Assembly: GCA_000388065.2 (NCBI GenBank)
Contig: KB932207.1
DNA from: Fonticula alba ATCC 38817
Lineage: Eukaryota > Protista > Nucleariida
Length of the DNA stretch: 13,339 nucleotides
Direction: 5' to 3' (one strand)
In this document: piece after piece, positions 3,160 to 11,507 of the stretch
Position numbering within the stretch: the stretch's first letter is position 1
How the letters are laid out: each line of letters opens with the position of its first letter
Program-made: the position numbers and the translations under genes
The notes under the pieces: model-generated
What the model was told of the DNA's origin: nothing
Seen by the model: the letters and a program-made list of their open reading frames with translations, nothing else
Database searches by the model: none

Positions 3160-3718
3160 TTACAGAATATCCATGCACGTGACAAGGTCATGGACCGGTT
3201 CGCCATAGATGTCGCGTGCACGGCGCGGCATCACATGCGCCGACCCGTAGACCGTGGCCAGGAAGAGCCACAGATGGTGGCTCACGCAAATGTAATGCCG
3301 GCCAAGAACCAGGCCGGGCCGCAGCGGGGGGGACAGCCGCGCGCCGGTGCTACAGGCATGGGCCGCCGAGTGGGCAGCTGCCGCGGCCGGGCCGCCTGGG
3401 GGCGATGGCGGGGACGGTGCAAGGAGCGAAGCGAAGTTGATCTGCCCCAGATGATGATGCCGATAGGGGACCAAGCGGGACAAGTGCCGGAGCCAATGCC
3501 GGGCCCAGTCCATCGGCAGGATGAAGAGAACACCGACAGACGACTCGAGGGCCCGCGGCCAGAGGGAGGGACAGGCCGCGAGGCCACACGGGCCGCCGGC
3601 CGCACCGTGCTGATGCCCATGCGCATCCACACCGCCCACGGTCCCGAGAGACGAATCACTTGAGGCCGACCGCGACAGGCTCATGCTGGAGGAGGAGTCG
3701 GTCGTGGCGGCGGCGGCG

Positions 3719-3756
<38 letters not shown>

Positions 3757-4025
3757 TCCAGCCCCAGGCAGCTGCATGGCTGCCAGAATCTGATCCAGCG
3801 TATCAAGGTCGAAGGGGGCCTGCGGGGAAAGGGACAGCAGGAACTGCACGGCATTCAACTCGGCCACATTTCGCAGCAGGAGCTGGTCGCACAGGAGACA
3901 ATGCCGACGGTTGAGATTCGACCGGGGATACCAGGCCGGGACCAGCGTCGACGTGAAGCCCAAACCCCGGCCAGGGGAGTCCTCCGGCGCCGGCGAGTAG
4001 AGACCCGTGGAGTTGCTGCCGGCAC

Positions 4026-4063
<38 letters not shown>

Positions 4064-7000
4064 TGGCCATGGCCCAGACCACCGCCAACGCCCCAGAGGG
4101 GGTGCGATGGCGAAGGCGAAGCCGGACGCACATCCGGCGACGAACCCAGCGAGGGCGAAGAGCGGCATGCCGACGATGCCCCGGCGCTCGGGGATCCAGG
4201 CCGCTCGCTGGTCGGGGAGACCGTCGAACGTGGCGGCTGCTGGGACACATGGTGATGGGGATGATGCTGGTGCTGGTGCTGGTGATGATGATGGTGGTGA
4301 TCGTGGCCCGGGCCGGCGGCCGAGGGGTCACCACCGACACCCCCACCCAGCCCGACCGGGTGGTAGTCCGACGAGAAGAAACTACCCAGGCCGGGGATCG
4401 GGATGAGGCGCCCGGATTGCGCACCGCCATGGCCGGGCGGCGGGTATTGCCCGCCGGCCAAGGCCGTAAGGCCCCACTGCGCGGTGAAGGCCGCAAACAC
4501 CTTCGGCGGCACAGCCACAAAGACATCGGTCGCCAGGAGCGGCCGACTGAGATTGACAGACACGCAAATGTCCCCGTCAGCCAGGTCGGCCGTGGCCGCC
4601 GGGGTGGCCACCATGTCGGCCGACAGCATGACCGGGCAGGCCGAGGGCCGGCCGAACACCGAGAAGGAGGAGGCAATGCTGCCGGAGGCCGCATCGCCAC
4701 AGGGCAGGGTGCCCGACGGCCCGGCCACCAATGGGGAGTAGCTCCCGGCACCGGCCGGATAGAGGAAGGACTCGACCGAGGCACTGGCCAGCCGGTGGAC
4801 CGACGACGACGACGACGACGACGACCCGGCCGAGCTGACAAGCCGGCAAGCACAGCCGGGCGGACAGGCACCCGAGTCAACCTCCGCCATCGAGGGGGAC
4901 GAGCTGTGCTGCCCGTCGTCCGGTGATGACAGCCTCAGGGACGGCGACCCGCCGGCGGAATGATTGACCGCCGCCAGGGCCGGACTACTGGCAGACCAGG
5001 GAGACCCGTCAGCCGGCGGCGACCACCGGTCGGCCGAAGCAGCAGCAGCAGCACCGCCACCAGGCCGCAGGCCGGCTCCCCCACAGGCCCCGGAGGCCGA
5101 GGCAAAGAGCGAGCCACACAGCAGCCCGGCCGCGATGTGACCGATGGAGCTTTCCAGGAAGGACACATGCTTCGGCAGGAGATTCGACCGAATGAGCGAC
5201 GACCCGTGGGGACAGAGCAGCGGCCGGACGTCGATTTGCCCCGGCGAGCCGGACCCATTCTTCCAGAGGTTGAACCACCGAAGTGGAACCAGCACCCAAT
5301 GCCCATGCGCCGGGGGGAGGATGGCCCCGCTGCCGGGGGCCGGGCGAAGGGGCGACTCGTCGCGCGAGGAGGCCGACGACCGCCGAGCCGCCGCGGCCGC
5401 CGCAGGCCCGCTGCCCATCGCCCCGCCGGCCGACGCCAATGAAGAGGACGACCCCATGGCCGCCACCGGTGGCGGGATCTGGGAATGTGGGAGAACCGGC
5501 CCGCCGGTCGAGGGCTTGCGCGACCCCGGGGGTGGCATCGAGCTGCTGCCGGACCGATGGCGCGACGAGTCAACCCCCGAGGATGACCGATCTACGCGTG
5601 AAAGACGGCCGCCAACTTCCCCAGGAGGCCGAAGCTCAGGCGACAGGGGCCGGTTGCCCTGGCTCAGGGCGGACAGATGCTCGTGCGAGCTGGCAGAGGA
5701 AATGAGCGATGTGGAGCGCATGTTGTTGTTGCCGCCGCCGCCGCCGCCGCCGCCGCTGCCACCAATGGGCGTGGGTGATTGGCCGGTCGGCAGGAAAGAC
5801 CCGCTGTGAGCACGCTCGGGCCACCACCAATCGGAAGACAAGCGCACCGGCCGAGGAATGGACAGAGGAGCCGTGCGCCCGGAGCGCCGGGCTCCACGCT
5901 GAGCTTCGTTTGCCCGGCGCCAGGATTCGAGCCCCGTCGTGGCCGGGGGAGAGTCCCCGCCAGCGCGGGGCTCCTCATCCTCGGAATCCGAGCCGGAGTC
6001 CACGCTGTCGAGGCCCGATCCGGAGGACCGGTCCTCATCCTCCGAGGCCCCGGGGGAGGGGGGCGGCGAGGCGTCCGGCGAGTGGTCCAAACAATCGACG
6101 AGGGCAAAACGCTCATGCCGACGAAGCTCGGCCACCAGCTTGCCAACAGCCCGCCGGCAGGAGGCCAACGGCCGGCGCTTGTAAATCAGGATGCACGGGT
6201 CGCCGGTGTGGCGCGACGCCCGGGTCAAATCCGACGAGGAGGACGCCTCGAAGACCTGCTCATTGTCGAAGGCATACCAGTGTCCGGTGGCCAGATTGCG
6301 CGAGTAGGTGACAAAGTGCCCGGGGGCCGATTCGCCGAAGGGCATCTGCCCGAGCATCGCCGTGTCCATGTGCCCCGGGCCGCAGGTACACCGGGCCCCA
6401 GCCGACTCGGCCAGGCAATGGTAAAACCCGCCGCGAGAGAAATCATGCCCAGCCGGCCGGGGAATGGCCCGGCAGGAACACAGGTCGTCCCCGCACAGGA
6501 CCAGCCCCTCGCCGAAGGGCGAGCCAGGAGAGGGGACCCGGCCGGCCGGAGTGGCGGTGCCGGGCCCGGAGGGACCCGAAGGAAGCGGCCCCGGCTCCGA
6601 GGCCGGAGCCTCGGCACAGATAATCTGCGTGGGTTTCACCGGGACCGTGCACGAAGACAAGTGCGTCACCATGGACACCAGGTCATAATCCGAGGAGTCG
6701 GCATCCGCGTGGGGAACACGCACGCGAAATTCCGCCACATCGAGCCCGCGCAGGGGGAAGCGCAATGAACTGAAGTTCTTCAGCTGCCGACTCCGGGTCC
6801 CGGCCGGGTGTGGCTGCGGGTGGCCCGGCGCCAGGGGGTGTGGCGCCATGCTGCTTGTGTGGCCGCCGCCGCCGCCGCCGCCGCCGCTGCCGGGACCCGC
6901 GGCGAAGAAGGACTTGCGTCGAGCCCCGAGAGCCGGCGGCTCCGTCGAGAGGGGAGGAGGAGGGGACGCGGTCGCCGTCGAGTGAGCATCGGCCGCCCCT

Positions 7001-7261
7001 TCGGCAGGGCGACCTCCGGCCGCCGGAGAGTCCATGCCGCCGGACTCATCGGGTCCAGCATCGGGGGCCTCGTATTGGGCGGCGAAGAAGCGCGGTAGAT
7101 GGATGATGAAGAACTCCGGCGGGATGAGCAGGTGTCGAGTGCGGCTGTGCGCGGTCTTGGCATTGCAGCCGGAGCAGTGGAGCCCTGAGCTGGCAGTCAC
7201 CGGGATGATCTCCGTGGAGAAGAACTCCTCCAGGCAGTCAATCAACCGGCAGTCGCTTGCA
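3160..7261 (-). CDS. Coding exon 6: rest of the USP core including His box, low-complexity linker, DUSP1 and DUSP2, stop codon
   Basis: Acceptor AAATCCAG|T, phase 2. A 4.1-kb open frame contains the His box and both DUSP motifs and ends ...RRARDIYGEPVHDLVTCMDIL-TAA. A further terminal intron cannot be excluded. Confidence 0.82.
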
Positions 7262-9455
7262 CTGGATTTGCACAGGAGGGGGGAGGGGGGAGGGGGAGGG
7301 GGCAAAGCAATGGAGAGAGGGAGAGACAAAGGGAGACAGATGTGCATCAGTGGATGGAAGAACAATCAGGAGGGGGGTATCGGAAAGGCAGGCCGGCCAC
7401 GGGAATGTGCAGAAGGAGAAAAGGACTACACGCACTTGAACACCTGGCTCTTGATCTTACGCCACTTGCTGGTGAGTTTGCTGAAGTTCGTGTCGACCAC
7501 CGGCTCGAAGCAGGGGGCGCCCCGGGTGGCGGAGTAGGGACACTTGCGAGTGACGCCGGACGGAGAACCGTGGCCCGCGGCGGCGCCGGGCGGAGCGGCC
7601 ACACCACCGGCGGCATGGAGCACGGGCGACGACGATCCACCCGACGCCAGGCCCGGGATGACAGTGGCCACGGCCTCGACCGAGTGCTCACAGAATGGCT
7701 GATCCCGCGAGGGGAGCACCGTTCGGGCCGGATGCGTGGAGTAGAAAACCCCAAGCCGGTGCTGGATCTTGCGTTGGTAGGCCGCGGCATCGGCATCCAC
7801 CAGGGGGATGTTCAACTCGAAGAAGCGCGACCGGCTGGAGGACACACGCTTGCAGCCGAGGCAGAAGTACTGCAACAGCAAGACACCCCCGAATGTGTCG
7901 CTCACCACGCTGGAGTTCGAGGAGAAGGCCATCTTCGAGGGGAGCTTGTTGGAGCTGCCGCTGGAGGTCAAGTAGGCCGAGGCGTCGGCCCGGCACCGGG
8001 CACAGCCCCGCTCCGATTGGAGGCTGCAGTCGGCGCACGACAGGCAGGAAGTCGCCCGCGAGTAGGCCTGCAGATCCGGGAGCTTCAGGTCATCATGGAG
8101 GCTGCGCAGGAGGAGCTGCAACAGCAAGAAGGCATCCTCCATGCGTGCCGGGTCGCCGGCCGGCGCCCGCGAAGCGGCCGAAGACCCGGAAGAGGCCGCC
8201 TCCCCCAGCAGGAAGGGATACCGCGCACGCACGGCCGACAGCAGCCTTTGCGAGGAGATGACCGGGCTTCGAGGCGACCAAGGGAAGGCAACATCCGTTG
8301 GCATCGATGGGGCCCAGGGCAGTCGAGCAGACGGGGCACAAGGGAGACAGAGAGGGAGGGGGAGGAGGAGGAAGAGGAGGGGGACATGGTCAGCCGGCAG
8401 CACAAACACCACAGCAAGAGGGGCAAATGCCCCGGCCGCGTACCGATTGACGTGCCAGTAGCTGGCCACAAAGTCCACGAAGGCCCCGGTGACAGTGGGA
8501 TGCCGCGAGGCGAAGAGCTTCAGGTACCCGGGCGCATGCTTGAAAAATCCCACCAGGATGTCGCTGCGAAGGCATACCACCGTCAGGAGGAGGGTCGGCG
8601 AGGTGGGAGAAGGGAGGGCAGCGGGGGAGAAAGCATGCTGCGACACATACCACGCCATCAGCGCCTGGAGGATGGCATTAAAGTGGCTGTCCTTGCCGGT
8701 GCTGGAGAGGCCCACCAGGCCGATGAGACGCGAGAGGGCTGTCTGCGACAGGACCGAGCCCGGGGAGGAAAAGGGATCACGCCCGCCGGAGCTACCGATT
8801 CCCAGCCGATCATGGCCAGCCGTCAGCAGAAGGAAGCTCAGCTGGAAGGGCAGGCGAATGCGGCTAAGGAGCTCCCGCATGCGAACCGCCTCCGGGAGGA
8901 GCCACACATCAGTGATATGGTCCCAGATGGGGATGAGCTTGGCGCAAATGTGGCACCAGACGGTGCGGTCAAAGAGCCGCACTGCGATGCAGTGGGAAGT
9001 GGGCTCGCCGGTTGCCAACCCAATCAGGTCGGTGCTGGAGGACAGGGCGACTTCGCTCTCGGAGTCTGTGGCAGGTGTGGCAGGGGAGGGTCAGGCGAGG
9101 TGGGCGCGGGAGGGCCAAAGAGGATGGGGTGAGAAATACCAAGAGGAAGGGCCAGGAAGAAAGGGAGAAAGGGGGAGAGAGAGAGAGAGAGGAAGCGGGT
9201 AGACACAAGCAGCGGTGGGGAATGGGGGCAACGGACCAGAGACCGGCTCATGGAGGTGCTGCGAGGCGCTGGCCGAGCTGGCACCGGCCAGCCCCGGGGA
9301 CAGGGCGGCGGCTGACATGTGTGCGAAGTGCTGAAGGGCATGATTGTTGACCTCACGCCCACAGGAGATACTCATGCAGTCGGCCTGGTGATGGTGAGAA
9401 GGGCGACAGGATGCAGAGCCGACACGCGGTGAGTGACAGGGCAATCGGAAAAGAC

Positions 9456-9501
<46 letters not shown>

Positions 9502-10866
9502 TCGCACCTCGGTGCACACCCACAGGTGCTGGTATGAAGCTGGGCAGTCGGTGCAGGTGAGCTTCGATGCGGCGGACACCTGGTGGAAGAGACGCTGCAG
9601 GTCGCCAAGCCGCTGGCGGAAGGAGTGGAAGTCCACCAGCGACAGGTGCGGGCAGATGTGCGACGCCACCTCGCGAGCGGCCGTATGCGACAGGTCATGG
9701 CTGGCGGCCAGCATGGCCAGGAAGGAAGTCGAGTGCAGTGAGCCGGGAAGCGGGCGGCCAGGGGACTCCGACCGATCGAGGGAACTCATGCGTGACAAGC
9801 GCCGGGCCGCTTGGCCACTTGTGCCCGACCGGGGAAACCGGGCAGCCGGCGAGGTAGGGCTACCGCCCTCCGGAAAGGGGTGGTGGAGGGGACCGGCGGT
9901 TGACAGGGCGACGCTCGACCGGCGGCTGCGACTCTGGGCGATGAGCGGCTCGAGCAGCGGGTCCGGTGGGTTGAGGAAAATCTCGCCGACAGAGGCCCCG
10001 GCATCGGGCGGCTTGGCGACCGGGCCAGGAACGGTCGAGGCGCCGGCAGCGGCCCCGACCACCGCCAGGGGGACATCTCCGACGGGGGGGGCAGCCCCAT
10101 CGGACGAAGGCCCGATCGGGGGAGCATCACCGGGGACGGGGGCAGTCAAGGCTGGCGGGTCCATCAGCGCCGCGGCCCCCGGGGCCATGGGGATCTGAAT
10201 GGACAAGGATCGAGAGCGAGCGCCGCGAGCGGGCGTGGGAACGTCGAAAGCCGGGGCCGCCGGGCCAACCGGCGGTGCGGCTGGAGGCTGAGGCACACTG
10301 CCGGCCGCAAGCTCCGACATCTGCCAGGGAACAACAGGGGCAGCCTCTCTCGGCACGGTGATCGGCAGATTGACAGCCGTGGGGGCCGGGACGATTGGAG
10401 TGGTCAAGGTGGTGGTGGCCGGAGGGGCGGTGGCCGGAGGGGCGGCGGCCGGCGACATGACCGAGGCGGCGGCCGGGGTGCTGGCTCCCGCGGTCGGGGA
10501 GATGAGTGCCGCCACAGCGGCATCGGTGGCCGCGGAGATGACGCGCGACAGCTCAACGATGTCCAAAGCCGGCGCGCCACCTGCCGACTGGGACCCGGGG
10601 GCACTGGCCGCCTGTAAGGCAGCCATCATGGCGGCGATCTTCACTTGGGAAATGAGTTCCTGGTTGATGGGCCCAGGTGAGGTGGCGGCGGTTGCGGTCA
10701 TCGGGGAGGCAGATGCCGCGACCACAGCACTGGCTGTGGCAGCGGCCGCCGCGAAGGCAGTCGCCTCGACGGGTGTAGCAGCCTCGCGGCTGGCCGGTGC
10801 CCGGGCGGTCTCGCCAGCGCCGGGACTCGGCGCCAGCGGGCCTGTCGTGGCCGTCGGTGTGTCCAT
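3160..10866 (-). CDS. USP20/USP33: USP20/USP33-like ubiquitin-specific protease (peptidase C19; ZnF-UBP + USP + 2x DUSP), probably catalytically inactive; join(complement(9508..10866,9237..9384,8651..9065,8444..8563,7436..8266,3160..7261)), 6975 nt, about 2324 aa
   Basis: Ordered USP20/33 motifs are visible in the translations: HICPHL...CTDC...LWVCTE/ADC...SCG...HALQH...HCIAV...VWCHIC (ZnF-UBP); GLVGL...NAILQAL (Cys box); EDAFLLLQLLLRSLHDDLK; SVVSDTFGG...CLGCKRVS...FFELNIP; LIDCLEEFF...CSGC...PEFFIIHLPRF; YDLVSMVTH; GHFVTYSRN...WYAFDN (His box); CILIYKR; and two DUSP signatures. GT-AG joins restore canonical motif spacing. Family assignment is from recalled sequences, not a database search. 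Exon boundaries are predicted. Confidence 0.88.
3220..3532 (-). other. DUSP domain 2
   Basis: LFILPMDWARHWLRHL...LGQINFASLL...LRPGLVLGRHYICVSHHLWLFLATVYG follows the DUSP pattern W..W...G.I.N...L.....DY..V...W..L...YG. Confidence 0.8.
3706..3756 (-). repeat. Coding trinucleotide repeat (GCG)12(GCC)5 encoding poly-Ala17
   Basis: Read in frame in exon 6. Confidence 0.95.
4027..4061 (-). repeat. Coding (AGC)n repeat encoding a poly-Ser tract
   Basis: Read in frame in exon 6. Confidence 0.9.
4249..4305 (-). repeat. His/Gln-rich coding repeat (HDHHHHHHQHQHQHHPHHH)
   Basis: Read in frame in exon 6. Confidence 0.9.
4471..5304 (-). other. DUSP domain 1, split by a long low-complexity insertion
   Basis: N-half WVLVPLRWFNLWK...PGQIDVRPLLCPHG and C-half VFVAVPPKVFAAFTAQWG resemble USP20/33 DUSP1. 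Confidence 0.65.
7262..7435 (-). other. Spliceosomal intron 5 (174 nt, phase 2)
   Basis: GTGCGT donor, pyrimidine-rich body, CTGAT branch-like motifs, TCCAG acceptor. Contains in-frame TAG (7426-7428) and TGA (7366-7368). Confidence 0.8.
7436..8266 (-). CDS. Coding exon 5: USP core (degenerate QQD box, SDTFGG, CLGC zinc knuckle)
   Basis: Acceptor CCTCGAAG|C gives WHVNR-PVISSQRLL, resembling WHKSRPGSVVPTTLF. Donor TTCAA|GTGCGT lies just before the ORF stop. Confidence 0.72.
8267..8443 (-). other. Spliceosomal intron 4 (177 nt, phase 2, stop-free and hidden inside the ORF)
   Basis: GTACGC donor, GCTGAC, long C/T tract, and no AG until CGAAG. Removal restores WH..R-P spacing. Confidence 0.65.
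8444..8563 (-). CDS. Coding exon 4: USP core (CDILVGFFKHAPGY...FVASYWHVNR)
   Basis: Acceptor CTTCGCAG|C and donor CG|GTACGC. Splicing gives LQALMACDILVGFF, resembling USP33-type LQALSNCPPLTQFF. Confidence 0.7.
8564..8650 (-). other. Spliceosomal intron 3 (87 nt, phase 2, stop-free and hidden inside the ORF)
   Basis: GTATGT donor, C/T tract, CCTGAC branch, TTCGCAG acceptor. Removal restores spacing after the Cys box. Confidence 0.75.
8651..9065 (-). CDS. Coding exon 3: ZnF-UBP end and the degenerate USP Cys box
   Basis: Acceptor CCACAG with branch-like CCTGAC about 25 nt upstream. Encodes HCIAVRLFDRTVWCHICAK and GLVGLSSTGKDSHFNAILQALM. Donor TG|GTATGT. Confidence 0.75.
9066..9236 (-). other. 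Spliceosomal intron 2 (171 nt, phase 1)
   Basis: GTCCGT donor, pyrimidine-rich body, CCTGAC branch, CCACAG acceptor. One in-frame TGA at 9091-9093. Confidence 0.62.
9237..9384 (-). CDS. Coding exon 2: ZnF-UBP middle (ADCMSISCGREVNNHALQHF...)
   Basis: Acceptor CATCACCAG|GCC gives E-ADCMSISCG, matching the USP33-type E-NRCSYVGCG. The 3' end at donor TCTG|GTCCGT is less certain; an alternative donor exists. Confidence 0.7.
9385..9507 (-). other. Spliceosomal intron 1 (123 nt, phase 0, contains TC microsatellite)
   Basis: GTGCGA...(TC)n...TTCTCAC...CACCAG. Removal restores ZnF-UBP spacing. Confidence 0.8.
9464..9498. repeat. (GA/TC)n microsatellite inside intron 1
   Basis: Seen directly in the sequence. 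Confidence 0.95.
9508..10866 (-). CDS. Coding exon 1: about 400-aa Ala/Pro/Ser-rich extension followed by the first half of ZnF-UBP
   Basis: ATG at 10866 opens an ORF ending in HICPHL...CTDCPASYQHLWVCTE, followed by donor GAG|GTGCGA and a (TC)n tract. 1359 nt, phase 0. Confidence 0.8.
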
Positions 10867-11372: not shown

Positions 11373-11507
11373 NNNNNNNNNNNNNNNNNNNNNNNNNNNN
11401 NNNNNNNNNNNNNNNNNNNNNNNNNNNNNNNNNNNNNNNNNNNNNNNNNNNNNNNNNNNNNNNNNNNNNNNNNNNNNNNNNNNNNNNNNNNNNNNNNNNN
11501 NNNNNNN
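11373..11507. other. Assembly gap (135 N) flanked by poly-G on both sides
   Basis: Seen directly in the sequence. Confidence 1.

Follow-up and report, generated by a model that had tools for sequence, protein, structure and literature searches.

A divergent USP-fold protein of Fonticula alba with serine at the nucleophile position, a probable lineage-specific pseudo-deubiquitinase

Whether a protein with a ubiquitin-specific protease (USP) fold that carries serine in place of its catalytic cysteine is a non-cleaving protein kept for another role, an enzyme of different chemistry, a relic drifting to a pseudogene or an artefact of the assembly is the question raised by a long gene of the nucleariid protist Fonticula alba ATCC 38817. 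The gene is located on the minus strand at 3160-10866 of a 13,339-nucleotide (nt) stretch of contig KB932207.1 (assembly GCA_000388065.2), hereafter referred to as the window, and includes about 2300 codons in a single reading frame throughout. A sequence-only reading of this DNA had described the product as a homolog of USP20/33, in which the catalytic Cys is replaced by Ser while His and Asp are intact, and had proposed an inactive scaffold. As judged here from its sequence features, the product is probably a non-cleaving, lineage-specific pseudo-deubiquitinase, maintained for some function other than catalysis, for instance binding, scaffolding or regulation.

The window was compared with aligned contigs from three runs of the source organism, for which the label "RNA?" is a guess, and from one soil-metagenome run of another study. 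Joints at GT..AG introns were found in the former and the latter crosses introns contiguously, indicating that the three source-organism runs represent cDNA and the soil-metagenome run genomic DNA. The elements of the catalytic domain that bear on the question were identified at the following positions.

8665-8712, minus strand: Cys box, GLSSTGKDSHFNAILQ (translation; RNA contig and independent DNA contig).
7849-7866, minus strand: first CxxC (CLGC) of the finger zinc ribbon (alignment A1 and BLASTP).
7162-7179, minus strand: second CxxC (HCSGCN) of the finger zinc ribbon (C29 and C32 invariant in alignment A1).
6322-6660, minus strand: Cys/His-rich insertion of about 107 residues in blocking loop 2 (absent from the 5 USPs in alignment A1).
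6259-6321, minus strand: His box, GHF plus WYAFDN (UCH profile positions 208-254; alignment A1).

The Cys box is present on the minus strand exactly where the sequence-only reading had placed it, positions 8677-8712 encoding GLSSTGKDSHFN. The catalytic Cys of USP (peptidase C19) is absent and its position is occupied by Ser (AGC, 8686-8688), and a second Ser (AGC, 8701-8703) is located five residues before the Cys, at the position of the oxyanion-hole Asn, the role of which in USPs has been described (PMC10867860). The box was assigned from its place in the gene, its splicing, motif statistics and the alignments made with HMMER and MAFFT, a basis that is considered sufficient. HMMER placed Ser 8686-8688 opposite the nucleophile in USP35 (a crystal construct, C450S), USP16 and USP18, and MAFFT placed it opposite the Cys of two canonical USPs; a relaxed regular expression for the Cys box gave one match in the six-frame translation and none in residue shuffles (0/300). 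The box is situated between zf-UBP and the following USP blocks, and is spliced to them. Pairwise BLASTP of the N-terminal half against canonical USPs aligned the zinc-ribbon block and left the Cys box unaligned, and the 36-residue Cys-box stretch gave no match to Pfam UCH, the canonical equivalents scoring 37 and 47 bits. A total of five near-invariant positions of the box are changed and the helix residues N-A-x-L-Q-x-L are kept; the decay is strongest in the catalytic loop of the Cys box, though all the boxes have drifted.

The reads at 8686-8688 were checked on both types of contig. One RNA contig (X11 record 14) joins 8712-8651 to 8563-8444 and 8266-8151 with 0 mismatches, indicating that the Ser-type box is present in the mature mRNA and is joined to the rest of the USP domain, and one DNA contig from the soil metagenome (X6 record 25) covers 8571-9065, also with 0 mismatches. 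The codon is AGC in the spliced cDNA as well as in the independent DNA contig, and sequencing error at the Ser codon is ruled out by this identity. The six frames of the whole 13.3-kb window contain no match to a canonical Cys box, which speaks against an alternative exon or frame as its source. Another Cys, formed at the 8651/8563 junction, was considered as an alternative nucleophile, but it is located 13 residues downstream on helix 1 and would be too distant.

The catalytic His (CAC, 6316-6318) in GHF and the triad Asp (GAC, 6265-6267) in WYAFDN are present as first described, and fall in columns H315 and D332 of alignment A1, both of them invariant, the motif being GHF instead of GHY. The earlier description of the His box as well kept is valid for these two residues but not for the box as a whole, which scored 17.7 bits against 33-56 bits in canonical His boxes and in which the triad Asp is followed by Asn (6262-6264) where 5/5 USPs of alignment A1 have a near-invariant Asp. 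The Asp beside the triad Asp is the "fourth critical residue", essential in most USPs tested (PMC10867860). Altogether 3/5 catalytic-site positions, those of the Cys, of the oxyanion Asn and of the fourth Asp, are changed. MEDAFLL (8122-8142), the drifted form of the QQD box, and the motif HLPRFF (7084-7101) were also found as described, and the latter is followed by a second insertion, of low complexity and about 94 residues. The four-Cys zinc ribbon of the fingers is present (CLGC and CSGC). The distance from the conserved loop His (6661-6663) to the catalytic His is 114 residues, against about 7 in canonical USPs; RNA contigs over 6047-6766 show no joint, indicating that the insertion in blocking loop 2 is not an unspliced intron.

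In the mechanism proposed from these features, the active site lacks the Cys nucleophile and the oxyanion Asn, both replaced by Ser, as well as the fourth critical Asp, replaced by Asn, and blocking loop 2, the gate of the ubiquitin-tail cleft, is disrupted by the insertion of about 107 residues, while the USP fold is kept, with the zinc-ribbon Cys, the core positions, His and Asp all present. Because of the lost active-site residues and the insertion in blocking loop 2, the protein would most likely be unable to cleave ubiquitin isopeptide bonds. For a USP-type enzyme, all isopeptidase activity and all labelling by ubiquitin-propargylamide (Ub-PA) were lost in the Cys-to-Ser and other Cys variants (bioRxiv 10.64898/2026.10.20.760496). 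That five near-invariant positions of the Cys box changed while about 2300 codons stayed open suggests that catalysis was lost long ago and that the protein has since remained under selection in a non-catalytic role. The earlier proposal of a pseudo-deubiquitinase has thus gained with respect to a deubiquitinase fold that lacks several catalytic residues, the Asp-to-Asn change at the fourth position, the loop insertion and the decay of the Cys box being added to it; the non-catalytic role, be it that of a ubiquitin binder, a scaffold or, as first proposed, a substrate trap, is what we infer from the rest.

Pfam and sequence searches were made exon piece by exon piece. The blocks of Pfam UCH (PF00443) downstream of the Cys box were matched in order, profile positions 86-141, 165-207 and 208-254 giving 12.2, 19.5 and 15.6 bits, respectively, and the open reading frame (ORF) 3160-7365 alone gave 24.1 bits against the cutoff of 23.9; alignment to PF00443, suggested as a check on the sequence-only reading, was therefore successful for these blocks but not for the Cys-box stretch. 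The PDB sequence matches of the C-terminal half were USP4, USP8, USP15 and USP11, and cover the second zinc-ribbon CxxC, HL(K/P)RF, the blocking-loop-2 His and the His box. The C-terminal half (6061-7260) was modelled by AlphaFold2 (AF2) on a 6-row alignment, the predicted local distance difference test score (pLDDT) being 70-87 for the core blocks and below 50 for the insertion in blocking loop 2. When the PDB was searched by fold with this model, the significant matches were all USP catalytic domains, the best with E 8e-5, and the ESM-Atlas features of the N-terminal half led to UCH clusters (0.92). On the strength of the fold shown for its C-terminal half, the protein is placed in the USP (peptidase C19) fold, from the other members of which it has diverged strongly. 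The insertion in blocking loop 2, which is kept in the mRNA, could be a metal-binding element; its identification as a folded zinc module is unsupported at the pLDDT given above.

The domains on both sides of the catalytic domain include the following.

About 9640-9657 (CPH), 9535-9555 (CTDC) and 9508-9525 (LWVC), minus strand: zf-UBP zinc-ligand motifs in the first exon (motif coordinates).
5191-5298, minus strand: first DUSP-like domain, partial and weak (Pfam DUSP 15.9 bits, positions 4-36, below the 29.3-bit cutoff).
3217-3525, minus strand: second DUSP domain, C-terminal (Pfam DUSP 44.2 bits, E 2.8e-11; 36 bits as isolated piece).

The zf-UBP profile was matched at positions 15-35 (19.6 bits at 9319-9381) and 36-56 (13.8 bits at 8938-9000), the pieces lying in order N-terminal to the USP domain, each singly below the 22.7-bit cutoff and with a visible zinc-ligand pattern. 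The PDB sequence search with either DUSP piece gave no match. The apparent domain order is zf-UBP, USP, DUSP, DUSP, and to our knowledge the combination of zf-UBP, USP and two DUSP is specific to USP20/33 among human USPs. The designation "USP20/33 homolog" agrees with this order but not with the nearest sequences and structures, which are generic and of USP4/15/11/8/2 type, nor is there an ortholog among them; the protein is placed with USP20/33 as a candidate, by domain order alone.

The gene is organized, in the order of its transcription, as follows.

9508-10866, minus strand: first coding exon, an open frame with the Ala/Pro-rich N-terminal region and the first zf-UBP zinc ligands.
10864-10866, minus strand: candidate ATG (predicted).
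9507, minus strand: donor of the first coding exon, GTGCGA (predicted).
9285-9384, minus strand: predicted second exon, the central zf-UBP piece (C..C-G-R and H-x3-H), with splice sites read from the DNA.
8651-9065, minus strand: Cys-box exon, also carrying the last zf-UBP piece (8938-9000); 3' end from the RNA joint 8651/8563, 5' acceptor at 9066-9067 predicted.
8564-8650, minus strand: intron of 87 nt, GT..AG (RNA joint in X11).
8444-8563, minus strand: short exon, the helix region after the Cys box (X11 record 14 and X13 record 19).
8267-8443, minus strand: intron of 177 nt, GT..AG (joints in X10, X11 and X13; contiguous in DNA contig X6 record 24).
7436-8266, minus strand: exon with the drifted QQD box and the first finger CxxC (RNA contigs; Pfam UCH; BLASTP and MAFFT).
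7262-7435, minus strand: intron of 174 nt, GT..AG, with an in-frame stop (joint in X10; contiguous in DNA contig X6 record 21).
3160-7261, minus strand: last exon, with the remaining, C-terminal half of the USP domain, extended linkers of low complexity and two DUSP-like domains, and the stop at 3160-3162 (ORF, Pfam and PDB matches).

Three GT..AG introns are supported by RNA, the joints being found in the cDNA-type runs only, and two upstream introns, about 9385-9507 and 9066-9284, are predicted from the sequence. The soil-metagenome contigs are uninterrupted across the 177-nt and 174-nt introns and into the 87-nt intron, the far end of which is the overlap point of two of these contigs. Over the first coding exon, RNA contig was found at 9701-9859 only. 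After removal of the three confirmed introns, the frame stays open for 1806 codons and ends in its single stop, a length that chance would be very unlikely to produce at the GC content of the window (68%), and the GC content at third codon positions (GC3) is 0.78-0.86 in the exon pieces (0.81 in the Cys-box exon) against 0.61-0.71 in the introns. The gene is genuine, transcribed and multi-exon, and is not an old pseudogene, which is ruled out by the 1806-codon open spliced frame and the exon-specific GC3. The earlier argument that an intact frame of about 2300 amino acids speaks against a pseudogene is upheld by the spliced open frame, the RNA contigs and the GC3 signature alike. The five intron lengths are all divisible by three (87, 177 and 174 for the confirmed introns; 123 and 219 for the predicted ones), and hence the gene is readable in one frame throughout. 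Two of the confirmed introns contain no in-frame stop, and their retention would add 29 or 59 residues to the USP domain with the frame unbroken.

Relatives of the protein were searched for in sequence libraries. No relative was found by word-index protein searches with residues 1-420 of the C-terminal half (swamped by low-complexity words), with the His-box region or with the DUSP2 region. Exhaustive phmmer search of 1.84 billion representatives with the 760-residue C-terminal half plus DUSP1 gave 6 matches of 38 bits or less and no ortholog, five of the matches being generic USPs or USP fragments (35-38 bits) and the sixth a repeat protein that has no relation to USPs. Nothing was detected when metagenomes were scanned with the Cys-box exon and with the His box. 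The gene's own product was not returned by any of the protein libraries searched, though the gene is transcribed; the gene may be unannotated or differently modelled in public annotation, or the proteins of this genome may be outside the libraries. The absence of relatives is weak evidence, because these libraries did not return the product of the gene itself.

A number of points weigh against a pseudo-deubiquitinase. After an old loss of catalysis, retention of the His and of the triad Asp would not be expected; these two residues, however, also have structural roles. All the boxes have drifted (QQD to MED, GHY to GHF), and binding of ubiquitin may be lost as well. No ortholog by which conservation of the Ser or purifying selection could be shown was found in the protein and metagenome searches. 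USP53 and USP54, long annotated as inactive, were later proved to be active (PMC12037411), a case that calls for caution when inactivity is concluded from sequence alone. In addition, USP-type enzymes without the Cys can retain ubiquitin esterase activity (bioRxiv 10.64898/2026.10.20.760496).

The first rival explanation, a functionless relic, supposes that the gene arose as a paralog of an active USP and, though transcription continues, is drifting to a pseudogene. The extreme divergence in every box, the large low-complexity runs and insertions, and the lack of both a relative and an annotated product in every library searched are in line with such drift, as are the coding differences between samples, which include a non-synonymous change, and a reference base contradicted in every run. 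On the other hand, no stop precedes the terminal one in the 1806-codon spliced frame, GC3 is elevated specifically in exons, the Cys-box exon included, and the zinc ribbon has all four of its Cys and the hydrophobic core its residues at positions that do not vary between this protein and other USPs; correct splicing is seen in three RNA runs, which come from two samples, and the many changes in the Cys box point to an old inactivation, yet no frameshift has followed. On this balance a relic is considered rather unlikely.

The second rival is an active Cys-independent hydrolase, in which a Ser-His-Asp triad in a USP fold or a His-activated water molecule would attack ubiquitin linked by ester bonds (to Ser, Thr, lipid or sugar) as the likely substrates, and not isopeptides. 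Such chemistry would agree with the retention of His 6316-6318 and Asp 6265-6267 amid mostly drifted motifs, but there are further replacements, at the oxyanion Asn and at the fourth critical Asp, the QQD box lining the ubiquitin-tail cleft is degenerate, and blocking loop 2 carries the 107-residue insertion. Ubiquitin esterase activity is kept by the C-to-A, C-to-G and C-to-S variants of TssM and by the C-to-A variant of USP21, and is weakly present in OTULINL, a Cys-less pseudo-deubiquitinase, whereas engineered C-to-S USPs are without isopeptidase activity (bioRxiv 10.64898/2026.10.20.760496); no natural USP with Ser as nucleophile was found in the literature searched. An active hydrolase of this kind is accordingly regarded as improbable, and it seems quite improbable that a natural serine-type USP, acting by Ser-His-Asp or by His-activated water, is a dedicated ubiquitin esterase with the insertion reshaping the cleft for ester substrates.

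As a third rival, the finding could be an artefact, the Cys codon having been wrongly sequenced or assembled, or the box having been mis-assigned while the true catalytic exon lies in another place. The window does contain two gaps of 135 N and a reference base (6159), if not more than one, that is contradicted by all runs, and 8713-9700 is outside RNA contig coverage. An artefact is nevertheless highly improbable, since the Ser codon and the whole box are identical in cDNA and in the DNA contig of another study, five positions of the box differ and not one, a canonical Cys box is absent from the six frames of the 13.3-kb window, and the box stands where it would be expected, flanked by zf-UBP and the next USP blocks, to which it is spliced.

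The probable pseudo-deubiquitinase of Fonticula may be compared with several known systems. Human USP20/USP33 (VDU2/VDU1) share with it the N-terminal zf-UBP, the USP domain with finger zinc ribbon and the C-terminal DUSP domains, the first of which is weak and tentative in the Fonticula protein, but are active Cys enzymes of about 900 residues, whereas the Fonticula protein has about 2300 residues, Ser/Ser/Asn replacements in the active site and the large insertion in blocking loop 2, and its best matches are generic (USP4/15/11/8/2-type, 25-38 bits). USP39 and its yeast counterpart Sad1 likewise consist of zf-UBP followed by a USP domain without the catalytic Cys, and have a non-catalytic scaffold role (PMC10919355). 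By analogy, USP39/Sad1 may be regarded as the nearest system in function, and USP20/USP33 as the nearest in architecture. USP39 differs in that the catalytic His is missing too, Asp occupies the Cys position, there is no DUSP, and the protein consists of about 565 residues and is conserved across eukaryotes, whereas the Fonticula protein keeps His and Asp, has DUSP domains and is without detected orthologs. Orthology to USP39/Sad1 is ruled out by the retained His, the DUSP domains and the differing size; the only match to a spliceosome entry in the fold search was 6ah0_W (a pre-B complex chain), which is marginal, with 70 aligned columns, at rank 37.

The engineered forms USP35 C450S (5txk) and USP2 C276S (5xve) and the variants of TssM and USP21 resemble the Fonticula protein in the USP fold with His and Asp intact and, for the C-to-S forms, in the Ser at the nucleophile position; the Cys box of USP35 C450S is the PDB sequence that was paired by HMMER with the Fonticula box. 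Engineered Cys-less USPs bind ubiquitin without cleavage of isopeptides, and some of them keep esterase activity (bioRxiv 10.64898/2026.10.20.760496). These variants are, however, single laboratory substitutions in otherwise canonical sites, whereas the Fonticula protein is natural and carries several further changes in the active site. PAN2 (USP52), USP53 and USP54 are also USP-fold proteins annotated as pseudo-enzymes, but in PAN2 the triad is missing altogether and the protein has its function in the deadenylase complex, and USP53 and USP54 still have the Cys and have been demonstrated to act as K63-specific deubiquitinases.

Pseudo-deubiquitinases are an established class, reported to account for about 13% of deubiquitinases, and act as scaffolds or allosteric partners (PMC10919355). 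As a kind of protein the pseudo-deubiquitinase is already known, and the Fonticula gene is most likely a further divergent example. A Cys-to-Ser USP with the layout zf-UBP, USP, DUSP, DUSP in a deep-branching protist would add an independent, lineage-specific origin of pseudo-deubiquitinases. Its importance would be greater if the retained His and Asp reflect real Cys-independent chemistry, and a natural Ser-type USP, if true, would be a ready test case for Cys-less hydrolysis of ester-linked ubiquitin. The general significance is modest, because the gene is a fast-evolving orphan with no orthologs for comparison.

Several minor observations were made on the window itself. The two assembly gaps of 135 N each are located at 1134-1268 and 11373-11507, and the former is adjoined by a poly-C run of 56 bases (1078-1133). 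Long GA/TC dinucleotide arrays are present at 1579-1625, 2677-2764 and 9452-9498, the last one within the predicted first intron. At position 6159, the reference has A on the plus strand (codon TGC for Cys, in the linker after the USP domain) and 4/4 runs have G (CGC for Arg); this is probably a base error of the assembly or a private variant. Two further bases differ between the soil metagenome and the window over 3.9 kb, one at 6806 changing Pro to Leu in a low-complexity insert and the other at 7588 being synonymous for Pro. Such near-identity of the contigs indicates that essentially the same organism was present in the environmental sample of another study. In addition, runs labelled "organism B" (2025) contain 60-80% of the sampled words.

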